Shown here piece by piece: positions 2,798-61,661 of a stretch of DNA of 64,000 nt. The notes below the pieces were generated by a model, which was not told where the DNA came from, did not search any database, and worked only from the letters and a program-made list of their open reading frames with translations. A program made the translations under genes and the position numbers. This stretch comes from Octopus bimaculoides (Eukaryota), in the NCBI RefSeq assembly GCF_001194135.2, contig NC_068983.1, positions 159,532,509-159,596,508 on the forward strand, read 5' to 3'. Position 1 is the stretch's first letter. The number at the start of each line of letters is the position of its first letter.

Positions 2798-3150
2798 CAT
2801 GGATTGGACGAAATAATGGAAACACCTTAAACAATCAAACGAATTAATTTCAATATGGGGTTGGACCGCCTTTGGCAGTAATTGCAGCTTGAATTCTATG
2901 AGGTATGGACTCGTACAAAGTTTGAGTTGTTTCCAAAGGAATTTTTGTCCATTCTTCAGCTAAAACAGTCTCCAGTTCTTGTAGTGCTGTACATCGGGTA
3001 TTTCGGAAACACCTTCAAGCAGTACCTCTCCAACCACAGATCTTCGTTCAGGATCCTGGAAAGACGATACGTCACTTTGTTGGCCAGTCATGTGTCATTC
3101 CTGAAGATCGAAGAGACTGACACGTAATCTCATGGAAAATCCTAGAAGAA
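2798..3150 (-). mobile_element. Tc1-family transposon 3' remnant with one terminus
   Basis: Minus strand reads ...ALQELETVLAEEWTKIPLETTQTLYESIPHRIQAAITAKGGPTPY* (stop at 2850-2852), the typical Tc1 transposase C-terminus. TA at 2796-2797 precedes a TIR-like catggattggacgaaataatggaaacacc. Upstream part is frameshifted and its extent uncertain. Confidence 0.7.
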
Positions 3151-3535
3151 TCGGGTCCTCACATCAACGGTAGCATGCGTTGCAAGCTGGGCATAAATGA
3201 ACAAGCGAGAGTATTAAAGGACTCCCTCAACCCGGGGAGCATCTTAAATTCCAGGAGAGAGTGCCTTTGGACCATGCTTACACTTCAAGAGATACCTTCT
3301 TAAGTCCTGGAACCCACACGCCGACCACGACGATTACGGATGGCGGTCTAAGGAAGAAATTCCTTTGCGCTTAAGCCTTCTTTGTCCGTACAATTAGCTA
3401 CGAGGTCTTTTATCCCTTCACATTGAAGAAATGTTACTGGCCATCAGCCACTAGGGTCTGAAGAAACGTCATATAACTAAGCACTTTATGGACGTGAAAC
3501 TCGGTAATCCCATTGACTGGCCTCAACTGTCGTTA

Positions 3536-3573
<38 letters not shown>

Positions 3574-3875
3574 TAGATAATATATATATGAAAATGTATG
3601 TATGTGATTTATTATATTCAAGCTATTATTGTTAGCTACATGGTGTGAAAAGGCACTGGTCCGACAAGTTTGTATAGCGTGTCGTGAGTTGTACAACCTT
3701 GTACGACCAATGTGTTTTCACAGCATGTTTTTACACCATGTAACTAATAGCAGCTCGAATTTAAATTCTGTATAACGTTATGATTTTTATCTCTCACGGG
3801 ATGGAGTATATAATGTATATATATATATATACAATAGTACATTATATATAAGCATTAACATACACACATACATAT

Positions 3876-3970
<95 letters not shown>

Positions 3971-4067
3971 GTGTGTGTGTGTATATCTATATATCTATGT
4001 ACATGTATATATTCATATGCGCATACGCACACACACATATATATATATATACATATACATACATTTG

Positions 4068-4388
4068 ACATATGGTATAATTATAAGCAGGGCAAATCTT
4101 AGCCATTTCTCCGCAGACTGGAAAAGAACGATGAAAAACCTTAATGGATTTTCGAACCTTACTGGGTTCTCATCAGAGGCATCTACATTGACAATCTCCA
4201 GAGAAACAAGTAGCCAAACTATTTATATACTCAACAAATGCAGCTGTTACTCTATGAAGGAGTCCGTAATTTGCATACCGAAAGCGTTTAACACTATAAA
4301 TACCAGCGGCCTGTCAACAGGGATCTTAGTCTACACAGTATCAAGGCATGATATAATATATACGTAACATATGGTATAATTATAAGCA
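4068..4388 (-). mobile_element. 277-bp insert between perfect 22-bp direct repeats, carrying a hammerhead ribozyme (retrozyme or PLE pLTR-like)
   Basis: acatatggtataattataagca occurs at 4068-4089 and 4367-4388, with the HHR core at 4130-4183 between them. Confidence 0.65.
4130..4183 (-). ncRNA. Minimal type-I hammerhead ribozyme motif
   Basis: Minus strand: GATG-CCT [CTGATGA] GAACC-cagtaa-GGTTC [GAA] AA-tcca-TT [A, cleavage after 4142] AGG-ttttt-CATC. All core nucleotides present, 5-bp stem II, 2-bp stem III, 7-bp stem I with a 5-U bulge. Confidence 0.8.
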
Positions 4389-4414: not shown

Positions 4415-5307
4415 CGTGATCTGATCAATAAGTATCCGGACCGTTGCTATAGTAACGAAGCTAAAGCACGTACAGTAAAGCTGCATGGCACAGGTTGACT
4501 TTCAACTCTGCTGTGCATGTACACTAATTTTTAACGTTCTAGCTCACTTTCCCCGTATACAGCTGTGCTTGGAAAAGAAGGTGTGTAGCGTGTGATCGTC
4601 GCATTGACCATAGCAGAAAGCTGCGCAGAGAATCTGCATCATATTTTGTCAAAAGCTTAACGATATCTACTCAGAGGCCTACGCGAATATTTCAAAAAGT
4701 TTTCATTGTTCTTGACACCATCAAGGAGATTTTGCACGACTGAAACCCTGGTGTCTTTTTTGTTAGCTGAAAGCAGTTTTGGCTCAAACTTCGCAGACAC
4801 GCGCCTCGTACCCAAATCTTCAGTGATAATGGACTGAACTGAACCGTAACTAATCTGCACATACTCTGATAACTCACGGATGGTGATTTGACAATTTCCC
4901 GTCACAGATGCACGCACCTGAGCGATGTTTTTCTTAGTTCTGCTGGCTCCGTGTCTCCCAGAACGTTCGTCAATATCGACATTTTTTCGGCCATCTTGGA
5001 ACGTCTGATACACTCGTACACTTATATGTGGCTCATACACTCTTCTCCATACACTTTCTGCAATTTTGCGTAGGCCTCTGAGCAGGTATCGCTATAACAA
5101 CTTTCTCTGTCGTGGTCAATGCGACAATCACACACTACACACCTTCCTTCTAAGCACTGCTCTATACAGCAGAAGTGAGCTACAACGTTAAATCTTAGTG
5201 CGCATGCAGAGCAGTGTTTAAGGTCAACCTGTGTCGAGTAGCTTTACTCTGCATGCTTTAGCTTCGTTATTATAGCAGCAGTCCTGATACTTATTGATCA
5301 AACCTCC
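4415..5307 (-). mobile_element. Non-autonomous mariner derivative (893 bp) with ~250-275 bp inverted arms
   Basis: TA at 4413-4414 and 5308-5309. Arms 4415-~4689 and ~5063-5307 are inverted homologs. ORF 4657-5040 encodes the mariner N-terminal region (DERSGR...TIRELSEYVQISYGSVQSIITEDLGTRRVSAKFEPKLL) with no catalytic domain. Confidence 0.9.
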
Positions 5308-19240: not shown

Positions 19241-19500
19241 TTTATTTCTTTATTGCCCACAAGGGGCTAAACATAGAGGAGACAAACAAGGACAGACAAA
19301 GAGATTAAGTCGATTACATCGACCCGAGTGCGTAACTGGTACTTAATTTATCGACCTCGAAAGGATGAAAGGCAAAGTCGACCTCAGCGGAATTTGAACT
19401 CAGAACGTAGCGGCAGACGAAATACCGCTAAGCATTTCACCCGGCGTGCTAACGTTTCTGCCAGCTCACCGCCTTACGTTTCTGCCAGCTCATCGCCTTA
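19241..19500 (-). mobile_element. tRNA-derived SINE family B, full length, with duplicated 5' 24 nt
   Basis: Reverse complement begins ggcggtgagctggcagaaacgttagcacg...gagttcaaattcc and ends in an A-rich tail; homologous to 40702-40935. Unit acgtttctgccagctca(c/t)cgcctt at 19452-19475 and 19476-19499. Confidence 0.9.
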
Positions 19501-21910
19501 AACGAGACTCAGACGAGAGTTGTACTCTTCTTGTATCGGACAACAGGTGTTCTATATAAGGCCACACTTCTGACACCTCCGGACACTGGACAATAGCATG
19601 CAGGACGGTTTCCCTCTCCTGCTCGCATCTTGGACAGGACGATGGGCCGGGATGACTGTGTCTAGTTAACTTATCCCGAACGAGTAAGGCTCCTCTGTAA
19701 TATTGCCAAACCAGAGACTTTCGTAAATTATCCATTGTCCGAATGTCCGTCGGAACAGAATGTCCAGTTGATTATCATCGAGACCCAAGGTCTTCTCTAG
19801 GGTATAGTCATATCCACACTCTACCAATCTACTATAAAAAAAATGCGGTTGTACCAAAACCGCTGTCATTGCCCGAGCGACGGAAAAGCAGGAGAACCTT
19901 CCGACACTCCGCGTATCAAGTACCCAACCTTGATCTTCGATGAAACCAGATTTCCCGTCCATTAAAACTAGTGAATCTGGGAAACATCCGTTTCTCCAAC
20001 GGAGACCACACTCGTTCACCACCCAGGAGGAGCCAAAGATACCTCAATCTCAGCGCATGTTTGCGCATCAACAGCTAAGGCACCCTTAGTTCACTTTTTC
20101 AAGGTTTTTGACAACAGATAGAACGTCTCACAAGTGGAGTCGATCCTTTCAACAAGAAGCAGAATATCTGTCTTTCCAACTTGCTCAACCACGAATCCGG
20201 AAAAGGAACGATGGTTAGGCGGTAGATGATGACCGATGCGATAAACACAATGGCCACCTCCACCCTCCCTTTCAGGGATAGCCACCGCCAGGACCAGCTC
20301 TTGACCATGTGGGTCACCTTACTAGATATCTCAGCCCAGTTATTTTCTACCTGGAGATCTGGACCAAACCTGACCCCTAACAATTTAACCGGGCCCTCCG
20401 TCCAATCCCACAACGCTGTCCGAAGGCACTGACTTGCCTCTCCAGATGCCGAGCTTCAAGCCGACCAATTTTCCCCAATAAATTTTACTCCTGCCACCGT
20501 CTCGTAAACTTAATGGTCTCAACTACCCTCTGTAGGTGTTCCATCTCAGTCGTGATGATGGTAATGTTATCTGCGTACGCTGAAACCGATCCTCCACAAA
20601 CCGGCTTCCTCGGGATGCCACTCAACTTTCGCAGTAACGGCTCAAGAGCCATCACATACAAAAGCAGCGAAAGCGGACATCCTTGGCGAGCCGAGGCTTT
20701 GAAAGAAAACTGTTCACGTGAACGATCGAGTCAATGTTATCGTACAATTGAATGATCCACCTAAGGAAGCCAAGACCCAGTCCGAACCGCGCAAGAACAG
20801 ACACAAGGTAATGATGGTCAAACCTATCGATGGTCAGCGCTATCGATGGTCAACCTTATCGACCTTGGTCTAAATGGACCAGTGCTCCACCCTTGCCAGA
20901 TTTACTATCAAACCCCTCCAAGGTGTAGCGTAGAAGGTGGAGATTGTCCTGAATGCTTCTGCCGAGAACGGCACATGTCTGTGCATCCCCGATCAGACCA
21001 TCCGCGACACACGCCAACCTTTTGCTAATACCTTGGCCAAAATCTTCAACTCTGTGTTTAGCAGAGTGATGGGCCTGAAATTGTCTACGCTATCCTCCTT
21101 GTCTGGGTCCTTCTTGACCAGCGTCACCACTCCTCGGCGCACAAATCTGGGAATCATCCCATTCTGCTGCCAGTTAGTGTAAATACTAGCCAGTAGGTGC
21201 CAGGACAAGTCTGGCATACTCTTATACAATTTGTAGGGCAGACCATCAAGATCCGGTGCCTTAACTACGACGCAGTCTGTTAAAGCCTCTATCACCTCCT
21301 CAGTTGTGATCGACCCTTCACAACAATTCGCATCCCGTCCCGAGAGACGCGGCAGCCCGGCGAGGAAGTCCGTAAGGTCCAACCTACTATCCGGCCCATC
21401 GCCCCTCCGGAGAAGCTGGGCGAAGTGCTCCTGAAAGGTCTTACACATCTCCTCGGGTTCGTTTATCAACTTCCCTTATTGGTTCACCAAAGATCGAACT
21501 GTAGAATCATTTCCACGTTGGGTTTCCATCACTCGGGCCCATCCAGCGGCCCTGATTCCCTTGCAGCCCATTGCACAAAGTCTAGCCATGACAATACACC
21601 CCATGTGCTTGGCTTCTAAGTGCTGGTTTAGTTCCAGTCTCTTCACCTTCACTTTCATCTGAGGTACACTGCCAGCCCTCATGGCTTCCTCTAGGGCCTT
21701 AACTAAATCTTGTTCCCGCTTACGCTTTCTAGCTACTAAATCTATGCTATATCTAATAGACTCAAATTTAATGTCTCGCTTGAGGGCATACCGCCATGTT
21801 TTATTAAGAATGGTTCCGGTTAGTGCCCTCTGTATCAATTTCTTAATCCGGTTCCTGTACTCTTCAATCGCTAAAAGGGACGTATTGAGTTTCCAGTAGC
21901 CGGAACCTTT
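19501..21910 (-). mobile_element. Tx1-clade LINE ORF2 pseudogene fragment (endonuclease tail, RT, zinc-binding region), truncated at both ends
   Basis: Minus ORFs give GYWKLNTSLL, KAPDLDGLP, NFRPITLLNTELKILAKVLA, VKLLGVRFG, WSWRWLSLKGRVEV and CPRCEQERETVLHAIVQCP, with many stops and frameshifts. Confidence 0.9.
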
Positions 21911-22247
21911 ACAATATAGCTTATGTACCTAGTATACTTAAGTGTAAAAGTGTCACAGAATGTTTGTGAGAAATACAAATGGAAACTTACCTAACAGATA
22001 GCCATGAGAGAAATCATATGTCATGCATGAGACACAATAGATTTAACCCACACATTTAGATTGAACTGCCTGTGTTCAGTCTACTGCAGGATGAAGACCA
22101 AAGCATCATCTCTCCACCAGCCACGGTCTGATGTGGAGGCTATGAATTTGAGCTTGTGTTCATACTTGTTTGATAAGCCTACTCTGCAACACTGGCTTGA
22201 CATGATTTGGCAGAGGGATGCAGTTTTTACACTCTTACCCAGAAGTA

Positions 22248-25155: not shown

Positions 25156-25475
25156 AAGGTGCATGACTCAGTAGTCAAAATGTCGGGCTCACAATCATGT
25201 GGTGGTGAGTTCGATTCCAGGACCGGGAAGACTCTTTATTTCACGTTACTCCAGTTCCCTCAGCAGTAGAAATGAGGTGCGACGTCACTGGTGCGAAGCT
25301 GTACCGGACTTTGCTTTTCTCTTGGACAATATCCGTGATGAGGGGAGACTGCAGTGGATGGGCGACTGCTGGTCCTCCACAAGCAACCTTTTCCCGACCT
25401 GTGTCTCAGAGGGGAACATTCTAGGTGCAATTCCGTGGCCATTCGTTGTCAAAAAGAGTTTTTACCTTTACCCTT
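25156..25475 (+). mobile_element. SINE family A
   Basis: Homologous to 2393-2718; follows a (TG)n tract. Confidence 0.85.
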
Positions 25476-25483
25476 TATATGTT

Positions 25484-26322
25484 CAAGACGACTTTCGGGC
25501 CTGAACCTATGGACAACTTCCAGAGATCCCTGGCCTGGCAGTGCTACCGAGGGGCGCTACCCGTTCGGGATAAGGTCTACCGACACCGCTCGAGAAATAC
25601 GGGGCCGACCTGCCCGAGATGCGGTCAGAGCGACAAGACCGTTCTGCATGCACTCATGCAGTGTCCAACCATTTCCGACCTGTGGGCTTATGTGGAACGA
25701 CTGCTGTCACGTGTGGGACGAGTCTGTCTATCAACCGAGTCTATCGTCAATATCGTCATGCCTCCTTCCTTTAAACGGGAAGGAAAAGCTGTTTTTATTG
25801 AACTTGTGCCTATGGCGAAAGAATGTATCTGGTGGACGCGTCTGAAAGGATTAGAGACAAACACTTTCCTCTCTGGTCAATCTCTCATCAACTTTTTCAA
25901 GTATCACTTGAAAAGGAAGGTGAGAGTCGAGAGGCAAGTGTTGTCTAATGAATGTTTCCAAAAAAGATGGGTGAATGTAGCAAGGATGGCACGTATAAAT
26001 GACGAAACCACCTTGAGCATGATCCTATGAAACGGGAAAATTTTAAAGCAGAGAGTTACTTACCTTGTGTAATTAAATCTATTAATCATGTAACATTATT
26101 GCCCGAGGTAACCGTGGTCTTTTCGTAGGTTTTTCTTTCCACGGATAAACCTTCTCATTTCTTGGGAACTTTTTGTATATATTTATCTTTCTTGTACATA
26201 CCCCAAACGTTTTCGATTCCTTTTGATCGTTGTCCCTATTTTTTTTTCGCCCCATCGAAAAGAAAAGCTCTACATTGTATTTGTCCCACCTGTGTTCAGC
26301 CCTGTGTGGCTAATAAAGAAAG

Positions 26323-26324
<2 letters not shown>
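25484..26324 (+). mobile_element. 5'-truncated Tx1-clade LINE: open ORF2 C-terminus, 3' UTR and AATAAA
   Basis: ORF 25425-26030 (AWQCYRGALPVRDKVY...CPRCGQSDKTVLHALMQCP...) is homologous to 19490-19735. AATAAA at 26312-26317, then (ATCT)n from 26325. Confidence 0.9.
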
Positions 26325-26354
<30 letters not shown>

Positions 26355-26356
<2 letters not shown>

Positions 26357-26637
26357 CTCGAACTGGTAGTGCGCCCCCCTTGGCAATGCTATCGGGACGC
26401 ACTACCAGTTCGAGAGAAGGTCTACAGACACGGTTCGAAAACCACCGGACCGACCTGCCCGAGATGCGGTCAGAGCGACGAAACCGTTCTGCACGCACTC
26501 GTGCAGTGTCCAGATATTTCAGAGCTGTGGACCTTCGTCGAACGGCTGCTGTCGCGTGTGGGACGAGCCCGCTTATCGGCCGAGTCTATCGTGAATATTG
26601 TTCCGCCACCTTCCTTTAAACGGGAAGGAAAAACGGT
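26355..26637 (+). mobile_element. Second 5'-truncated Tx1 copy, runs into a gap
   Basis: WQCYRDALPVREKVYRHGSKTTGPTCPRCGQSDETVLHALVQCP..., closely similar to the preceding copy. Confidence 0.9.
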
Positions 26638-26930
26638 NNNNNNNNNNNNNNNNNNNNNNNNNNNNNNNNNNNNNNNNNNNNNNNNNNNNNNNNNNNNNNN
26701 NNNNNNNNNNNNNNNNNNNNNNNNNNNNNNNNNNNNNNNNNNNNNNNNNNNNNNNNNNNNNNNNNNNNNNNNNNNNNNNNNNNNNNNNNNNNNNNNNNNN
26801 NNNNNNNNNNNNNNNNNNNNNNNNNNNNNNNNNNNNNNNNNNNNNNNNNNNNNNNNNNNNNNNNNNNNNNNNNNNNNNNNNNNNNNNNNNNNNNNNNNNN
26901 NNNATCTATCTATCTATCTGTCTGTCTGTT

Positions 26931-27003
<73 letters not shown>

Positions 27004-27117
27004 GCTTGCCAGCTTGTGTGCCCGCCTGTCTGCCTGCCTGTCTGTCTGCCAACCTGTCTGCCTCTATGCCTTTCTGCCTGCCTACCTGCCTGCTTGCCTG
27101 CCTACCTGTCTGACTGA

Positions 27118-27164
<47 letters not shown>

Positions 27165-28578
27165 CTTGCGTCGTGCGCGCGCGCAGTATGTGTCTGTGTG
27201 TGTATAAATGTTATGAAGGATATCTGTATATATTTAGATGTCAGATCATCATAGTCGTTTAATGAAATAAGTTATTTGGTGTTTCATACTATAAATATAA
27301 AATAACAATTTGTTCTAAATCTCTGAGTGAAATATATACAATAATAGTACCGAATAGTAATGTTTATATACCAACAAATTGCGAAATCTCTCTCCACTCG
27401 GAAATGCTGTTGCGGTACTGTTCGGTATATTCTGTACTGCTACTGTATAAATCTCACTCAGAGATTTAAAACAAATTGTTTTTCTCTATACGAGATCAAC
27501 GACTGTGTGTCCCTTATAGAATATATAGCATTTGCGAGTGAAGAGAGCTTTCGTCACTAGCTTGTGATTATCTCACACTGAGAACGGGTAACCACCCAGA
27601 AACCTAAGGTCGGTGAGTATCACGTAAGGCTAGAGATGGGAGCGATGAACTCCCTTCCAAATTGCTAAACAAACATAAAGTGTGTGCTGATAGCCAGCTC
27701 GAAAAGATGTTTTCCTGGGGCTAAAACAACAGTAACATCGTCCTTTATAGGACTGCCGCATTTTGTTGGTATATAAACATTACTATAAAATAACAATTGA
27801 CTATAAGTTTCCTTTTGTTACCTTCACTGGACTTAGACTCTTTAATTTTATGTCTCTGCTTTCCCACTTTTAATGTCACTTTAATGTAATTTGCGAATAG
27901 TAGTGCATAACCGTAGTTAAGTGCTATACATATCTCTTGCTCTTTAACTCACAGCTAAATGCTTCTTAATTTGAGAAAGGTTTATATATAACGCGGTGTT
28001 TTAAATTGAATATAAATTGAATTATTCTACTTATTATATTGCTTGCTTCTATGGCTTCATTCTTTTAAATGAATTTAGCAGTCAAATAATATCATTCATG
28101 TAACTAGGAGAAACACCACATCTCCTCCCCGTGCACACACACGCACGCACACATACGTGCACTCACGCGCGCGCGCGCACACACACATATTTATGTATTA
28201 GGTAGCATTGTCCGAACCATATTTTACTAAACTCTAAGGAAAAATACAAACTAGTCAAACGGGGAAATATGAAAGGAAGACGAACAAATGTGCGACGATG
28301 TGTTCTCAGTTTCTGACAAGTCATAACTGCTAATCAGAATATTGCCAGTAATATACAAGTGAGTCAAAGTTTTAAGTTTGGTACAATATAAGAAGACAAG
28401 AGTACTGTAGTAAAAGAGAACTGCAGAGACTGTGCTGTAGTTTTTGAGTAATAGATGTTGAAAATAAAGAATAAAAGTGATACTTGTATCAGTGGAATAT
28501 TTAAGTGCATAAATATTTTAGATTGATTTAATAGGCTTAAAATTTTCATTACATTTTAAACCTTGCGTTTTGATTATA

Positions 28579-44449: not shown

Positions 44450-45130
44450 GTTTCCAAACACGAAGGCCACAAACCTACATTACTAGTAGAGTAATAGAAT
44501 GATGTCATTTTCTGTATCGATAACAAGCAGACATACGGCAAACATATATAATTACTCAATTCGACTGTACGGAGCCCAAGGTTTGCTGAGCCACAATCAA
44601 ATAGATGATACTGATATTGATAACAATAAGTCATCATAAAGATAGCCTTCTGTTTCGCAAGGACTCTTCCAAAGTGGAAAAAATACCTTGGATTGAATAG
44701 ATACCATCAACATAATTATGGTGGCAATTGATAACACGGATGTTTGTGAGCTCTTAGGGCTTTTCATTTTAGACGTTCTTGCTTGGAAAGTTACAACCAT
44801 ATACTTTGGAATAGCTATAATTTAAAGCATTAATGGTGTTAGATGAAGTGAGAAAGAACATCATTCACAAATTAACACTTTCGGTCTTGAAATTACTATA
44901 ACCTAACTACTAGTGACTTTCTTGGCAAGATTTATCATTTACATTCCACAAAGCCAGCAGGAAGTGAAGCGAAAGTATCTCCTATAATAACCTGGAATGA
45001 TGCCCACCATAGTGTAGTGTTAAATCAACTCATGTACTACATTAGAAGTAGCATCCTGAATATCTTGCCAAATAAGAATACATTTAGGTATTCGACTTCA
45101 TCCTAAAATACGCTTTCCTAACTATTTTAC
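44450..45130 (+). mobile_element. Penelope-like element RT remnant
   Basis: Broken frames give KDSLLF, NIIMVAIDNTDVCELLGLFILD (cf. PLE MGSFDGAEVCELVGLFIL), FGLEITI and DFLG. Confidence 0.7.
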
Positions 45131-45959
45131 TCCGAAAGAAAATTACTAATCTACCTCTCTCCTTACCTTTAGAAATGAAAAAAATGATAATGAAATATAT
45201 GTTCTAACCCCTGATTTTCACTCAATGTAAAATCTAATAAAGGGAAACTTACATGAATAAACAAATACATCCCTCCTAGCCACAGATATATGAAATCTTT
45301 AAGAGGCACAATCTTCAAATTCATTACAGATGTACCAAAAACATTGAAACATAATATTATAGATACCAACAATGAAAGCAAGTGGTATATACCCGGGAAA
45401 GGTTAGTATGTACTAGACAAATTTTGCAGAGTAGAATCAATGATTTATCAGGCAGTAATCACACCTATAATACCTAATCTAGCAGAAAAATCTAACTGCT
45501 AGAAAGTTTATATAATTATATATTCTCGTATAAAACTACAGATAATATAATGATATATTCTCGTATATAATGATATATTCTCGTATAAAAGTACAGTATC
45601 TCTACAAATTGGGCATACACTTAGAAGAAATCGGATACACTTAGAAGAAGGATACACTTAGAAGAAAGCGGACTGCTATTTTCCAAACGTTAATTACTAG
45701 AAGAATTCAAACGATGACTCATTACAAGTAAAATGTGCGAATTATTCACGGAAGAGAAAAGAAAATATCCAGCTAATATCTTTATTAACAATATCTTTGT
45801 TTAAGCAATAGATCCGAGATGTCTGGAAAATGCAGATACTTTGAAAAGCACTTTTACAATACCACCAGTTAACATGAAATACAAATGTGCACCGGCACCT
45901 GATATTGCTTCATCTTAGCCTTTTTCTAGTCATTCTTCTACCAACTTCCTTTCTGCCAT

Positions 45960-47213: not shown

Positions 47214-47545
47214 GCATGGTTCAGTGGTTAGAGTGTCGGGCTCCCAATCATACAGTAGTGGGTTCGATTTCCGGACCGGACTGTGAGTTGTGTTCTTGAG
47301 CAAGACACTTTATTTCACATTGCTCCAGTTCACTCAGCTGTAGAAATGACTTGCGACGTCACTAGCGCCAAGCTGTATCGGTCTTTGCCTATCCCTTGGA
47401 TAACACTGGTGGCGTGGAGAGGGGAACCGGTATGCATGGGCGACTGCTGGTCTTCCATAAATAACCTTTCCCGGATTTCTGCCTCGGAGGGGAACTTTCT
47501 AGGTGCAAACCCATGGTCATTCATGACCGAAGTGGTGTTCCTTAA
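47214..47545 (+). mobile_element. SINE family A
   Basis: Homologous to 2393-2718. Confidence 0.9.
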
Positions 47546-47551
47546 CGTGAA

Positions 47552-47726
47552 TGTTGTTGGCACTCCATCGCTTACGACGTCGAGGGTTCCAGTTGATCCG
47601 ATCAACGGAACAGCCTGCTCGTGAAATTAACGTGCAAGTGGCTGAGCATTCCACAGACATGTGTACCCTTAACGTAGTTCTCGGGGATATTCAGCGTGAC
47701 ACAGTGTGACAAGGCTGGCCCTTTGA
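47552..47726 (-). mobile_element. SINE family D 3' half, tail-to-tail with the SINE A copy
   Basis: Reverse complement of ~42030-42200. Confidence 0.9.
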
Positions 47727-48053
47727 AAAACGTGAATATTACTATTATATATTAACCTATATGACGGTACTTCCTGCCTGTTTCGATGTTTGAGAATTTG
47801 AAGGAGAGTAAAGTTTTCTCTGTAGATTGAAAATAAATAAATAAATAAATAAATAAATAAATTTACAACCTTAATCAGTTTTCGAACCTTATAAGGTACT
47901 CATTACATGTGTCTACATCATTTTGACCAATCTAAGAAAAACAGTCAGCCAATATATTTATATATTCAACAATTCCAGTAGCTACAGAGGACTGGAGCTG
48001 TTAATTAGTTTACCGTATGTGTTAACACTTTATTTAACACCGAGACCTGAGTC

Positions 48054-48800
48054 GCAGGCATGGCTGTGTGGTTAAGATGATCGCTTCGCAACTACGTGCT
48101 TTTGGGTTCAATCACACTGCACAGAACCTTGGTACTTTGCAATAAGCCCGAGCCTATTGTCTTCCACTGTAACCCAAAGCTGACGCTCTTTGAGATTATT
48201 TGAATTTGGTTGACGGAAACACTATATTGAAATCCGTTGCATGTAGGGTGAGGGCTTTCCGTACAGGTTTGTTTGTTTGTTTGTATGTATGTATGTGCGT
48301 GTGTGTGTGTGTAAGTACAACATATATGCATGCATGTATGTTTGTACTTACACACACAAACACACACATGTATGATTGCGTGCCTCTGTGTTTGTGTTTA
48401 CCCTTCTTTTGCTTGAGAACAGCTGTTGGCTTGTTTACTTCCCCGCAGATTAGCAGTTCGGTAAAAGAGAGGGATACAAAAAAGTAACATACTTTTGCAA
48501 AAAGAAGTACTGGGGTGTATTTGTCCGACTAAACCCTTTAAGGTGTTGCCCCAGCATGGTCGGAATATAATGACCAAAACAAGTAAAAAAATAAAAAAAG
48601 ATAAACAGACGCAGGCGTGGCTGTGTAGTAAGAAGGTTGCTTCCCGACTACATGGTTCCAGACTCAGTCCGACTATGTGCCACTGTGGGCATATGTTTGT
48701 ACGGTTTGTTCGGCCGACGAAAGCCTTGTGAGTAGATTTGGTAGTTGGAAATTGAAAGAAGTCCGTCGTATATACATACATACATACATACACACACTCA

Positions 48801-56745: not shown

Positions 56746-58130
56746 ACACTAATAGGTAAATAGCTATCCACAAGTATAAAAATATAAAGATATGGATAGA
56801 GAAAAATTAAAGTAAAAGCATATAAACATATAGATAAAAGAAATAAACATTTAGATATGAATAACTGAATATAAGGATAAAAAGAATTATATATATATTT
56901 CTACACACACATACATATACATATATATACATATAATACACATACACATACATACATACACACACACACATAAACACACACATATAAATATATGTATATA
57001 CACACAAATATATATATTTGTTTCTCACTCACACCATATATTACCATATATTGGGAAAAAATTAAAAAGAAGAGGAAATAAAATGTAATTAAAATAGTTA
57101 AAATAAGGTATCATATCCCACTATATAATTTATATAATTTACAAATATATATGAACATAACAAGTTAGCAAGTTATATTACATATTTATTGCAAAAATGT
57201 CCATTGATAGATAATTAAAAATGATATAGAAAACAAAAAATAATTTATTCCATATAATAACTATCCCTTCCCAGAGTTATATCCTCTATATAAGAATTTG
57301 TACTATAGATATATTAATAACACTATATTGATATCAACTATATAAATAACTTGCAAAAACAGATTTATTATTTATTAATACTAATGAAATATTAAAATTC
57401 TACTTATATTTAGCAAAAAGAAGTTTACTCGCATGGTTAGAGGCTAAAATTGTATCAGAATGTGTGTTCAAAAGAACTCACATCTTTTATTTGCGATATT
57501 ATAAGATTTCGCATGGCTAATGATATTCCAGTCCAATTTAAAATCTATTTTCTTATCTTTACGCTCCCATATGATTTTACTCAGATAGGTTGTGTTAATC
57601 TATTTCGTATCGTTAAAGCTGTTTAAGCGGTTAAAGAGCGAGTTTTAAATTTATTAGATGTCGATCCAATGTACGTATACTTATTGTTAAGTACATCAAT
57701 CTCACATTTATTTACAGTAATATCTTAGTTCATTTTTACTTACAATCCTAGTTTTTGAAGATCTTATTCTTTAAAAGTTCATGGTATTTCGTGACCCATC
57801 CATCTGGTATAAATATGGTACAAAGATTTTTAAGTTGGCATCCACCTATATCATTTCAGAATTTATTATTATAATTATAATTATCATCATTATTATTATT
57901 ATTATTATTATTGCCAATTCTATTACCATAGAAGTTGTCGAGTTTTCTGTTATTTAAAGATGAAATTATTCGAAATAAATTTTTGGTTAAGCAATGACCA
58001 ATCATGATATTATTAGTATTAATTATTTGCTATATTTATTATTCATGTTGAAATACTTATCAATTAATTTATATATTTGTCTAATTATCTTCTGTTCATA
58101 TTCATAGCATAAGGGATTATGTACCAATTA

Positions 58131-58203
<73 letters not shown>

Positions 58204-59567
58204 ATCTAAATTTATCATTAGTATATTTAATTTTACCCTTATATCCGGCCTTTTCTAATACGGCATTATAAAAATCAGCATGTCAACTAAAAATCTCCTT
58301 ATTAGATGATAAACATGATATTCGTTTTCAATATTTTAAATTAAGGTATTTCTAATTGCAGCAGGATGATTGCTAAAATCATTGATCTATCTTAACATTG
58401 TATTTGGTTTATGAAATGGTTCATGCTTATCAGTTACAAGATGAAGGTTAGCATCCAAAAAATTAGCAGATCAGTTATCTTTTACAATAGAAATAGCAAA
58501 GTCATTCCTCTTAAAATATTTATAGAGATGTGTCTTATAGAAGTCCAGTTTTCTAGGAGTAGTATTTTTAATAGCAAAAAGACATCGTCCTCGATAAAGA
58601 CCAACAATAAATTCAGAGAATTCACTTTTAATTTGGGATAGCAGGTGAATTCTGACTATTTCAGTAAACTGGGCAGAGTCGGCAGGTACCATGGTAATAT
58701 CAAAATTTTTATAAGTGTCCCTACGAGCCCAGTATTTATTGTCAAGTCTAATCAGAGATTACCTTGCGTTTAATATAATATTGATTTCCTCTTTGCTAAT
58801 GTTAGTAAAATTTCTTAAAACAATGAGTGCTTTATTAAGGACTATAGGGTTAGTAGACGAGTAATAACTACTAATATCAACTTTTCAAAATTTATATTTA
58901 TTCTTACTAGTAATATTATTAAACCAGTTTAAAGCTTGGTAGGTGTTAACCCATAATTCAAGATTAATTTTTTCCTAGCTATAGGTATATTTATCTAAAA
59001 TGAGTTTACTAAGTTTATCTAATTCAGATCGGCCAACACAAATCAATCTAACTTTAGGGTCAATATAGAAGTTTTCCTTATGGTCCACCAGTGTAATCCG
59101 TGGTCGCATAGGTGCGAAAGGTTCAGTTCTATCCTGGATATGAAACTGGTGCATAATTTTCTTGGTTTCAAGGTTAGTAGTTCTTACTTCATTTTTACTC
59201 ACAATCCTATAGTTTTTGACAATTTCATTCTTCAAAAGTTCATGGTATTTAGAGACATCCATATGGTATAAACTATTAGTTTTATCCGATTGGACAAAAA
59301 TTCCATCCTTACTTCTAAAGATTTTAACAATATTAATAAGTTTTCTCTGGTGAGCATTTCTCCGCAGCGGATCTTTTTGAAGCTTAATATTTTTAATTCT
59401 ATTACATAATTCACTTTCGAAATGTCCCAGCTGTTTATTTCAAGGCGAGATTTGCTAGGTCTGAAATTTCTTTTAATATTATCAACCTCAATATCAAGTT
59501 CACTCATAGAATAGTTGTGTAGAATCCTTTGTATCATAATGCTACACACTTTATCTGAGCATTAATG

Positions 59568-60593: not shown

Positions 60594-61661
60594 TGTCGTG
60601 AAGTAGGAAATTTGTAGAAAATTAAAAAATGTTTGCTAATATTTTATAAATACAAGAAAAAGTTTTATTCATCAAAGTATGCACCCATATTGTCAATACA
60701 CTTTTGCCATTTCAGGGTTAGCTTGTCTAGCACGGAACTGTAAAAGCCTGGTAATCTAGAGTCAATAAAATCTTGGAAGACCTGTTTTACAGCATCGTCG
60801 GAAAAAATTTGTTTTCCTATCAAAACGTTATCCAAATTCTGGAAGTGGTAGTCAATGGGGGTAAGATGAGGTGAGTATGGTGGATGATGGAGAACTTCCA
60901 ATTCCAACTCCTGTAGTTTCACCAACGTCATTTTTGCGATGTATGGTCTGGCGTTGTCTTGCAATAAAATAGGAATGGATCTGTTGACTAATCTAAGCTG
61001 TTTTTTGTAAGTTTCCGCATCATTTGGTCCAGTTAGCTGCAGTATACTTCGGCCGTGATTGATGAGCCAAGTTTAATGAAATTATAATGGATCACACCTG
61101 CGCCAGACCACCAAACACACACCATCAGCTTCTTTTGATTTGATGAATTTTGCTTTTTGGATTGTGTTTTGGTGACTCATCTTTGCCCAACTATTGTGCT
61201 GAGTGTTTACGATTGTTGTTTTGGATTTATTTCTCATCACCTGTTACAATTCGATTAAAAAATGACGAGAAAGTAGCATAATGCAGGCTTCCAAACGTTG
61301 CTGTTTCTTATTTTCGTTGAGTTCATGTCGAACCCACTTATCCATCTTTTTTCACTTTACCGATTTGAACTAGGTGAGTCAATATCGTTCGCTCGCTAAC
61401 ACCAAACAACAACGATAATTCACGGGCACTTGAGATGGATCTGACTCGACGGTGACTTTCAGTTCGTCATTATCCACCGCGTTGCTCATTTGTGAGGTCA
61501 ACGTTTCCAGAACGAAATTTTGCAAATCAATTTGATACTGTCTGCTGTGTAATAACATTAGAATGAAATACTCCATTAATATTCCGAGCTGTTTGTGATG
61601 CTGTATTTCCAAGAAAGAACTCATATTTCAAAAGTGTACGAATTTCCGACTTATCCAACCC
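60594..61661 (-). mobile_element. Internally deleted mariner (Hsmar1/cecropia-like motifs) with both TIRs degenerate
   Basis: QDNARP...HPPYSPHLTPIDYHF...WQKCIDNMGAYFDE* (60665-60964), GDEKW upstream and VDNDELKVTVESDP N-terminal piece. TIR cores aagtaggaaatttgta / tacgaatttccgactt; TA at 61662-61663. Confidence 0.85.

Follow-up and report, generated by a model that had tools for sequence, protein, structure and literature searches.

A short non-coding insert with a type-I hammerhead motif and 22-bp flanking repeats in Octopus bimaculoides, a probable solo copy of the Penelope-dependent hammerhead class

Introduction

Metazoan non-LTR retrozymes are non-coding units of 170–400 nt with low GC content and no LTR, PBS or PPT that carry canonical type-I hammerhead ribozymes (HHRs) and whose target-site duplications (TSDs), where present, exceed 4 bp (PMC7229834). 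Monomeric derivatives are common among them, and their origin has been traced to the pseudo-LTRs (pLTRs) of Penelope-like elements (PLEs) (PMC7229834; bioRxiv 10.64898/2026.07.22.740005). PLEs themselves are 5′-truncated on insertion, have terminal-repeat HHRs near their 3′ end and insert into AT-rich or (TA)n targets; their reverse transcription starts shortly downstream of the ribozyme, leaving a ‘tail’ (PMC4209133, PMC8557442, PMC11167929). The HHRs reported at PLE ends are atypical minimal variants (PMC7229834). Other short hammerhead repeats include Sm-alpha and Sj-alpha of Schistosoma and satellite 2 of newts, which measure a few hundred bp and have a weak helix III that favours dimeric action (PMC6765202, PMC4209133). 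We found no report of such hammerhead elements in the cephalopod lineage in the literature.

Here we analyse a 277-bp insert, copy A, in a 64,000-nt stretch of the Octopus bimaculoides genome (contig NC_068983.1; hereafter the window, with positions counted from its first letter). A first-pass annotation had offered two readings of the insert, as a terminally redundant retrozyme monomer or as a lone pLTR fragment of a PLE flanked by a long TSD, presumably mobilised by PLEs of the same window. We find that copy A is a real, hammerhead-bearing mobile-element copy of an already described class, the PLE-dependent hammerhead elements or animal ‘retrozymes’.

Boundaries and composition of the insert

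The insert is bounded by a perfect 22-mer, ACATATGGTATAATTATAAGCA, which recurs with a period of 299 bp (Table 1); direct reading confirmed both the repeat and the period given by the first-pass annotation. Five perfect non-microsatellite direct repeats of at least 18 bp, spaced 50–1,000 bp apart, occur in the window, and the 22-mer is one of them. Its GC content of 23% is nearer to that of the outer flanks (12–17%), which are (TA)n-rich microsatellite on both sides, than to that of the insert (39%), and it carries on the ACAT/TA microsatellite, itself degenerate, that makes up the left flank. Because the 22-mer is target-like in GC content and unlike the insert, the 22-bp repeats are most likely a TSD. 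This composition also speaks against the terminal redundancy that had been proposed for the unit.

Stops interrupt all three sense frames of copy A, and to that extent the earlier statement that the insert has no open reading frame stands; it needs qualifying for the antisense strand, where a stop-free frame runs through 3852–4364. That frame is closed in copy B, a second family member described below, and its 4068–4364 part returned no homologs when used as a protein query. Copy A lacks a poly(A) tail, as had been noted, and likewise a simple-repeat tail. With PLE proteins as queries, tblastn found no PLE protein remnant in copy A or copy B, nor adjoining either of them in the right orientation. 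Between the 5′ end fixed by the TSD and the HHR lie 183 nt of non-coding sequence, and a further 52 nt separate the predicted cleavage site from the 3′ end. Folded as a whole, the unit shows no unusual degree of structure (z = −1.05) and no sign of a rod-like or especially stable form. Being non-coding, 277 bp long, 39% in GC and flanked by a 22-bp duplication, copy A has the make-up of a non-LTR retrozyme unit; with a sense HHR near its 3′ end, an AT-rich microsatellite target and an apparently 5′-shortened relative, it also has the layout of a PLE tail.

Sub-threshold Rfam matches of the mir-466/mir-297 type at 3950–4080 were rejected as miRNA genes, since they are hairpins of (TA)n/(CA)n microsatellite.

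Table 1 Coordinates of copy A, its relative and the PLE remnants in the window
Feature	Positions	Strand	Basis
Direct repeat, 3′-side copy in element orientation	4068–4089		22/22 identical to 4367–4388
Copy A, non-coding insert, 277 bp	4090–4366	− (RNA sense = minus)	Bounded by perfect 22-bp repeats
Type-I hammerhead motif (HHR)	4130–4183	−	Direct reading, descriptor scan, shuffles, folding
TATATAAA box, putative promoter element	4222–4229	−	38 nt upstream of stem I
Direct repeat, 5′-side copy in element orientation, then (TA)n	4367–4388		Direct reading
Copy B, diverged, apparently 5′-shortened, hammerhead decayed	47801–48049	−	blastn, MAFFT, nhmmer
5′-truncated PLE fragment: GIY-YIG region (2990–3267) and 3′ UTR, ends at (TA)n	2985–3535	+	tblastn with PLE proteins, reading
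Minimal hammerhead candidate of the PLE fragment	3453–3511	+	Relaxed descriptor
Weak PLE reverse-transcriptase (RT) remnants	44565–45463	+	tblastn, E 5e-5 and 1e-3
Degenerate PLE: N-terminal part and RT (59466–58205), GIY-YIG (57632–57480)	57480–59466	−	phmmer, tblastn down to E 1e-70

A complete hammerhead core with a weak predicted fold

On the minus strand, the 5′ strand of stem I (GAUGCCU, 4183–4177) faces the 3′ strand AGG-UUUUU-CAUC (4141–4130), giving an open helix I of 3 + 4 bp across a U5 bulge at 4138–4134, or of 4 contiguous bp with a G-U pair, and thus the type-I topology. The core strands are CUGAUGA (4176–4170) and GAA (4153–4151). Stem II, GAACC/GGUUC (4169–4165/4158–4154), has 5 bp including G10.1–C11.1 and a CAGUAA loop, and helix III (4150–4143) consists of AA/UU, that is, 2 bp including the A4150–U4143 pair, around the 4-nt loop UCCA. 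H17 is A4142, the triplet is UUA, and cleavage is predicted between A4142 and A4141. Every conserved core position is in place: C3, U4, G5, A6, N7, G8 and A9; G12, A13 and A14; the A15.1–U16.1 pair; and an H17 that is not G. Our reading agrees with the first-pass account of a complete minus-strand core with a 5-bp, CAGUAA-capped stem II, a 2-bp stem III and a UUA triplet, and divides the 7 bp of its stem I into 3 + 4 bp around the five-U bulge.

A strict hammerhead descriptor matched this site alone in the 128 kb formed by both strands of the window. At the quality level set for the shuffles (helix I of at least 4 bp, helix II of at least 5 and helix III of at least 2), a motif at least as good arose in 0.7% of 300 dinucleotide-preserving shuffles of the window. 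This is clearly unusual for a single window, yet such a rate implies many chance motifs per genome, so the context of the motif matters. The Rfam hammerhead models, which the first-pass annotation had put forward as a check, gave no match at the gathering score across the whole window and none at E ≤ 10 on stretches of 551 nt and 96 nt.

Folding predicts −2.5 kcal/mol for the active conformation of the HHR, compared with −11.2 kcal/mol for the minimum free energy structure. Predicted pair probabilities are 0.00 for helix III and 0.02–0.03 for distal helix I, which makes both helices thermodynamically negligible in the model. The first-pass annotation had placed stem III one substitution from a palindrome and noted that retrozymes can act as dimers through a palindromic stem III; the dimer duplex predicted for helix III of copy A is of poor stability, at −2.4 kcal/mol compared with −8.1 kcal/mol for the true palindrome AAUCGAUU. 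Efficient cleavage of the monomer is doubtful, given these unfavourable predicted thermodynamics, and for one PLE hammerhead cleavage has been demonstrated only in the presence of its protein.

A putative TATA box upstream of the ribozyme

The TATA-type box that had been placed about 39 nt upstream of the hammerhead is present at a distance of 38 nt. It forms part of a block, TTGTTGA(G/A)TATATAAATA..TTGGCT, that is conserved in copy B; indeed, conservation between the two copies is highest in this TATA-box block (TTGTTGARTATATAAATA..TTGGCT) and in the ribozyme's 3′ half. Its sequence and conservation suggest that TATATAAA may serve as a promoter.

A second kind of promoter was also considered. 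On the minus strand, GGTTCGAAAATCC (4146–4158) extends across helix II, GAAA and helix III and is similar to a Pol III B box. About 50 nt upstream of it, TGGCTACTTGT (4206–4216, minus) is a poor match to an A box, and a T5 run follows the HHR cleavage site. Copy A showed no clear Pol III A box, and ARAGORN reported no tRNA-like structure or gene. A Pol III promoter reading of these motifs is possible but weak.

A diverged second copy in the window

The first-pass annotation had seen no homolog of the insert elsewhere in the window. This proved wrong: copy B, the sole other copy, lies 43 kb away in the same orientation and is about 70% identical to copy A, which as the only query recovered it with nhmmer at E = 3.9e-13. 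The alignment starts at position 54 of copy A and runs to about the same 3′ end. Just after the ribozyme, copy B contains an (ATTT)n expansion at 47831–47862.

The hammerhead of copy B keeps 11 of the 13 core positions, the exceptions being C3→G and G5→A, and 10 of its 14 pairs, with the other 4 broken. Compensatory changes between the copies number 0, in a comparison of two sequences of which one is decayed. Since copy B retains most core positions and pairs, the parsimonious reading of the two sequences would be a ribozyme already present in the ancestor of the family and lost in copy B, rather than a chance feature of copy A.

A start at position 54 combined with about the same 3′ end is what target-primed reverse transcription in the sense of the HHR would leave if it stopped short of the 5′ end. 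An inverted tRNA-like SINE head (48056–48275) adjoins copy B on its 5′ side, and the short 5′ end may reflect either interruption by this SINE or 5′ truncation. Neither the copy A locus nor the copy B locus shows a tandem arrangement.

Further afield, two patterns, TAAGGTTCGAAAANNNATTAAGGTT and CTGATGAG-N14-CGAAAA-N3-ATTAAGGTT, had no match in collections of metagenomes, viral genomes and prokaryotic genomes, and no copy of the element was present at the loci of other organisms (L001–L008) that we reached through relatives of the LINE and PLE proteins.

Penelope-like elements and other repeats in the window

Copy A shares the window with three to four PLE remnants. Those that the first-pass annotation had placed at 44.5 kb and 57–59.7 kb were recovered at 44.5–45.5 kb and 57.5–59.5 kb, and a further one came to light at 2985–3535. 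This last fragment, with the GIY-YIG motif VYIGYFGNTFKQYLSNH and about 210 nt of 3′ UTR, lies about 550 bp from copy A, and the 3′ ends of the two face each other. We considered copy A as its inverted partner or pLTR and rejected this, given the roughly 550 bp of unrelated sequence between them, their different ribozymes and the TSD that copy A has of its own. The fragment seems to be inserted into a Tc1-like transposase remnant (2750–2985, minus).

Near its 3′ end, the fragment carries a candidate minimal hammerhead in which CUGAAGA (at 3458) is followed by an unpaired A and a stem II of ACGUC/GACGU with a 20-nt loop; helix III is A-CUCGG-U, and the cleavage site, just past A3506, would lie 29 nt short of the fragment's 3′ end. 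The relaxed descriptor that found it gave 2 matches in the window, where 0.34 were expected. A typical minimal PLE hammerhead, CUGAAGA-U-CCC-UUCG-GGG-U-GAAAC, occurs at 2288–2411 of L008, a PLE homolog contig in the public assembly of another organism, about 45 nt past the stop codon of the open reading frame and with a palindromic helix III, ACCAUGGU.

The degenerate PLE at 57480–59466 has the GIY-YIG motif YIGSTSNKFKTR. With its fragment 58978–59439 as query, HMMER (phmmer) returned 853 relatives, many of about 720 aa, which supplied the tblastn queries for mapping the PLE remnants; the closest named one is a protein of the octopod Argonauta hians. A word-based protein search with the N-terminal PLE fragment returned nothing, and Pfam did not recognise the PLE fragments. 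An intact hammerhead was not found in the 3′ UTR of this element; CTGATACA...GAGTAAAC, near 57400–57440, may be a decayed one. The element is interrupted by (AAT)n tracts, and a segment of its N-terminal coding part (‘KYHELLKNEI’) is duplicated in short form at about 57750–57800. A blastn comparison of copy A with UTRs of the window's PLE remnants gave no match, and so pointed to none of them as its partner.

The surroundings are those of an AT-rich draft scaffold (GC about 33%) with many transposon remnants and 16 runs of N of 10–874 bp, in which tandem hammerhead arrays could have been collapsed or hidden by gaps. GC-richer remnants of LINE reverse transcriptases lie at 19500–22000 (minus) and 25300–27300 (plus); the latter region contains a zf-RVT domain and a direct duplication spaced by 845 bp, with perfect repeats of 30 bp and 24 bp from 25605 and 25764. 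Mariner/Tc1-type transposase-like sequence is found at 60668–61072 (minus), with a sub-threshold match to Pfam DDE_3 (19.7 bits; cut-off 28.6), and, from reading of the translation and with no Pfam match, at 4660–5091 (minus), about 270 bp from copy A. Apparent tRNA-derived SINEs, of two kinds and in several copies, lie at 2437–2655, 25209–25421 and 47259–47621 (plus), and at 48056–48275 and from about 48640 onward (plus). One kind translates as ‘VLEQ..LF...PVHSAVEM’, three times over, and ARAGORN called none of these apparent SINEs a tRNA.

Discussion

The features of copy A combine to match the published signatures of PLE-type insertions, from which we infer that it is a solo insertion made by target-primed reverse transcription. 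As to what was inserted, we lean towards a short, non-coding hammerhead retroelement dependent on PLEs and present here as a solo, dead-end copy, in other words a monomer of the non-LTR retrozyme type. Judged from the sequences, such a non-autonomous status is favoured by the canonical G10.1–C11.1 hammerhead, the conserved TATA box, the size in the retrozyme range and the dissimilarity to PLEs of the window. Against it stand the presence of two copies only and the lack of a tandem array. The class named by the first-pass annotation thus holds as a hammerhead-bearing, non-coding retroelement insertion of PLE type, whereas a retrozyme in the strict sense, with tandem units that yield circular RNA, is not borne out by a locus with a single hammerhead and no tandem array.

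In the mechanism we envisage for such a monomer, the element would be a module of TATA box, type-I hammerhead about 40 nt downstream and 52-nt tail past the cleavage site. At source loci with at least two units, or with a PLE-style tandem arrangement, transcription from the TATA box would give RNAs that are cut at the UUA|A of every unit; as helix III is weak, cutting would probably need paired ribozymes or the help of a protein. An RtcB-type ligase could then close the unit-length RNA into a circle, and a PLE RT could copy it. At the present locus, the RT and GIY-YIG endonuclease of a PLE would have turned RNA of minus-strand sense into a genomic copy through target-primed reverse transcription, and staggered cuts in the AT-rich, (TA)n-flanked target would have produced the 22-bp TSD. 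The transcript of copy A itself would be cut once at most, and because the locus has only one HHR, no circle would be excised from it.

The main competitor, which we regard as possible though less likely, makes no appeal to a separate family: copy A would be a severely 5′-truncated autonomous PLE, reduced to the hammerhead and tail of its 3′ UTR or pLTR and flanked by the 22-bp TSD. PLE insertions are usually 5′-truncated, with an HHR placed close to the 3′ end in their terminal repeat, the nearby fragment at 2985–3535 displays this very layout, with a 3′ UTR of about 210 nt and a hammerhead 29 nt from the end, and the 5′ end of copy B appears to be shortened. However, neither copy runs on into PLE coding sequence, the TSD fixes the 5′ end of copy A, with 183 non-coding nt between that end and the HHR, and no similarity to copy A was found in the UTRs of the window's three PLE remnants. 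Its canonical G10.1–C11.1 hammerhead also contrasts with the minimal variants at PLE ends, namely the one at 3458, the one in L008 and those in the literature. Improbable by comparison is a reading in which the 22-mer belongs to a 299-nt unit. The copy would then comprise about 1.07 units, produced by reverse transcription more than once round a circular or multimeric RNA, and the true TSD would be hidden in (TA)n. Retrozyme circles have been proposed in the literature as templates for tandem cDNA, and TA-rich microsatellite flanks could mask a short TSD. Over the first 11 nt of the 22-mer the flank of copy B agrees at 8 of 11 positions, and over the whole at 12 of 22, which is weak and non-significant given the freedom of alignment; past the midpoint of the 22-mer, similarity is down to background level. 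Further points against this reading are the target-like GC content of the 22-mer, its continuation of the left-flank microsatellite, and the common, defined 3′ end that copies A and B seem to have, which is easier to reconcile with a linear template than with entry at random points of a circle.

Similarly improbable is the related proposal that the 22-bp repeat is the overlap left when a PLE RT went slightly more than once round a 299-nt, hammerhead-processed circle, and so the footprint of rolling-circle retrotransposition. Least credible of all, and in our view very unlikely, is a chance or long-dead motif in an unrelated short repeat, such as a Pol III SINE-like one, with neither a ribozyme role nor a link to PLEs. 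The Rfam models and the comparison of the copies, with neither a match nor covariation, are what such a motif would give, as are the weak predicted active fold and the many chance motifs per genome implied by the shuffles. The B-box-like GGTTCGAAAATCC and the T5 run after the cleavage site point the same way. Yet in the diverged copy B the corresponding site still has most of the core and of the helices, and ARAGORN finds no tRNA-like structure. The position near the 3′ end, long TSD, (TA)n, lack of poly(A) and co-occurrence with PLEs all match PLE-type elements that bear hammerheads.

Retrozyme monomers and truncated PLE tails are both known kinds of sequence, so copy A is ordinary under either reading. 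As it stands, the locus holds one copy, probably inactive, of a class already described, and it opens no new question. Should the family prove abundant and tandem elsewhere in the genome, it would add the cephalopod lineage to the animals with hammerhead retrozymes, and its module of TATA box, hammerhead and tail, together with clean TSDs, would lend itself to the study of how PLEs choose their templates.

Comparison with known systems

Among described systems, Sm-alpha and Sj-alpha of Schistosoma and newt satellite 2 share with copy A a short non-coding repeat in which a promoter, putative in copy A, is followed by a type-I hammerhead with a weak helix III. Those families are very high in copy number and often tandem, and their cleavage has been demonstrated (PMC6765202, PMC4209133).

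The pLTR or 3′-end hammerheads of PLEs (Cervera & de la Pena 2014, PMC4209133; Craig et al. 2021, PMC8557442; PMC11167929) come closer in layout. Like them, copy A has a sense HHR tens of nt from the 3′ end, an AT-rich or (TA)n target, an apparently 5′-truncated second copy, no poly(A) and a promoter-like element in the same module. It differs from pLTRs in being unattached to a PLE open reading frame and in having no similarity to the PLE UTRs of the window. Whereas its helix II has 5 bp with G10.1–C11.1, the minimal hammerheads at 3458 and in L008 each have a nucleotide at helix II that is left unpaired.

Metazoan non-LTR retrozymes (Cervera & de la Pena 2020; Li, Clavereau & Pollet 2026) are recognised by at least two tandem HHR units, which allow a unit to be excised, and by unit-length RNA in linear and circular form, whereas 4068–4388 holds one unit with one ribozyme and neither locus studied here has a tandem array; the helix III of copy A is non-palindromic and the unit is not predicted to be highly self-paired (z = −1.05). 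In other respects the likeness is close: copy A and these elements have in common a canonical type-I HHR, a non-coding unit of 170–400 nt with low GC content, a TSD of more than 4 bp and co-occurrence with PLEs, and dispersed monomer derivatives have been described among them.
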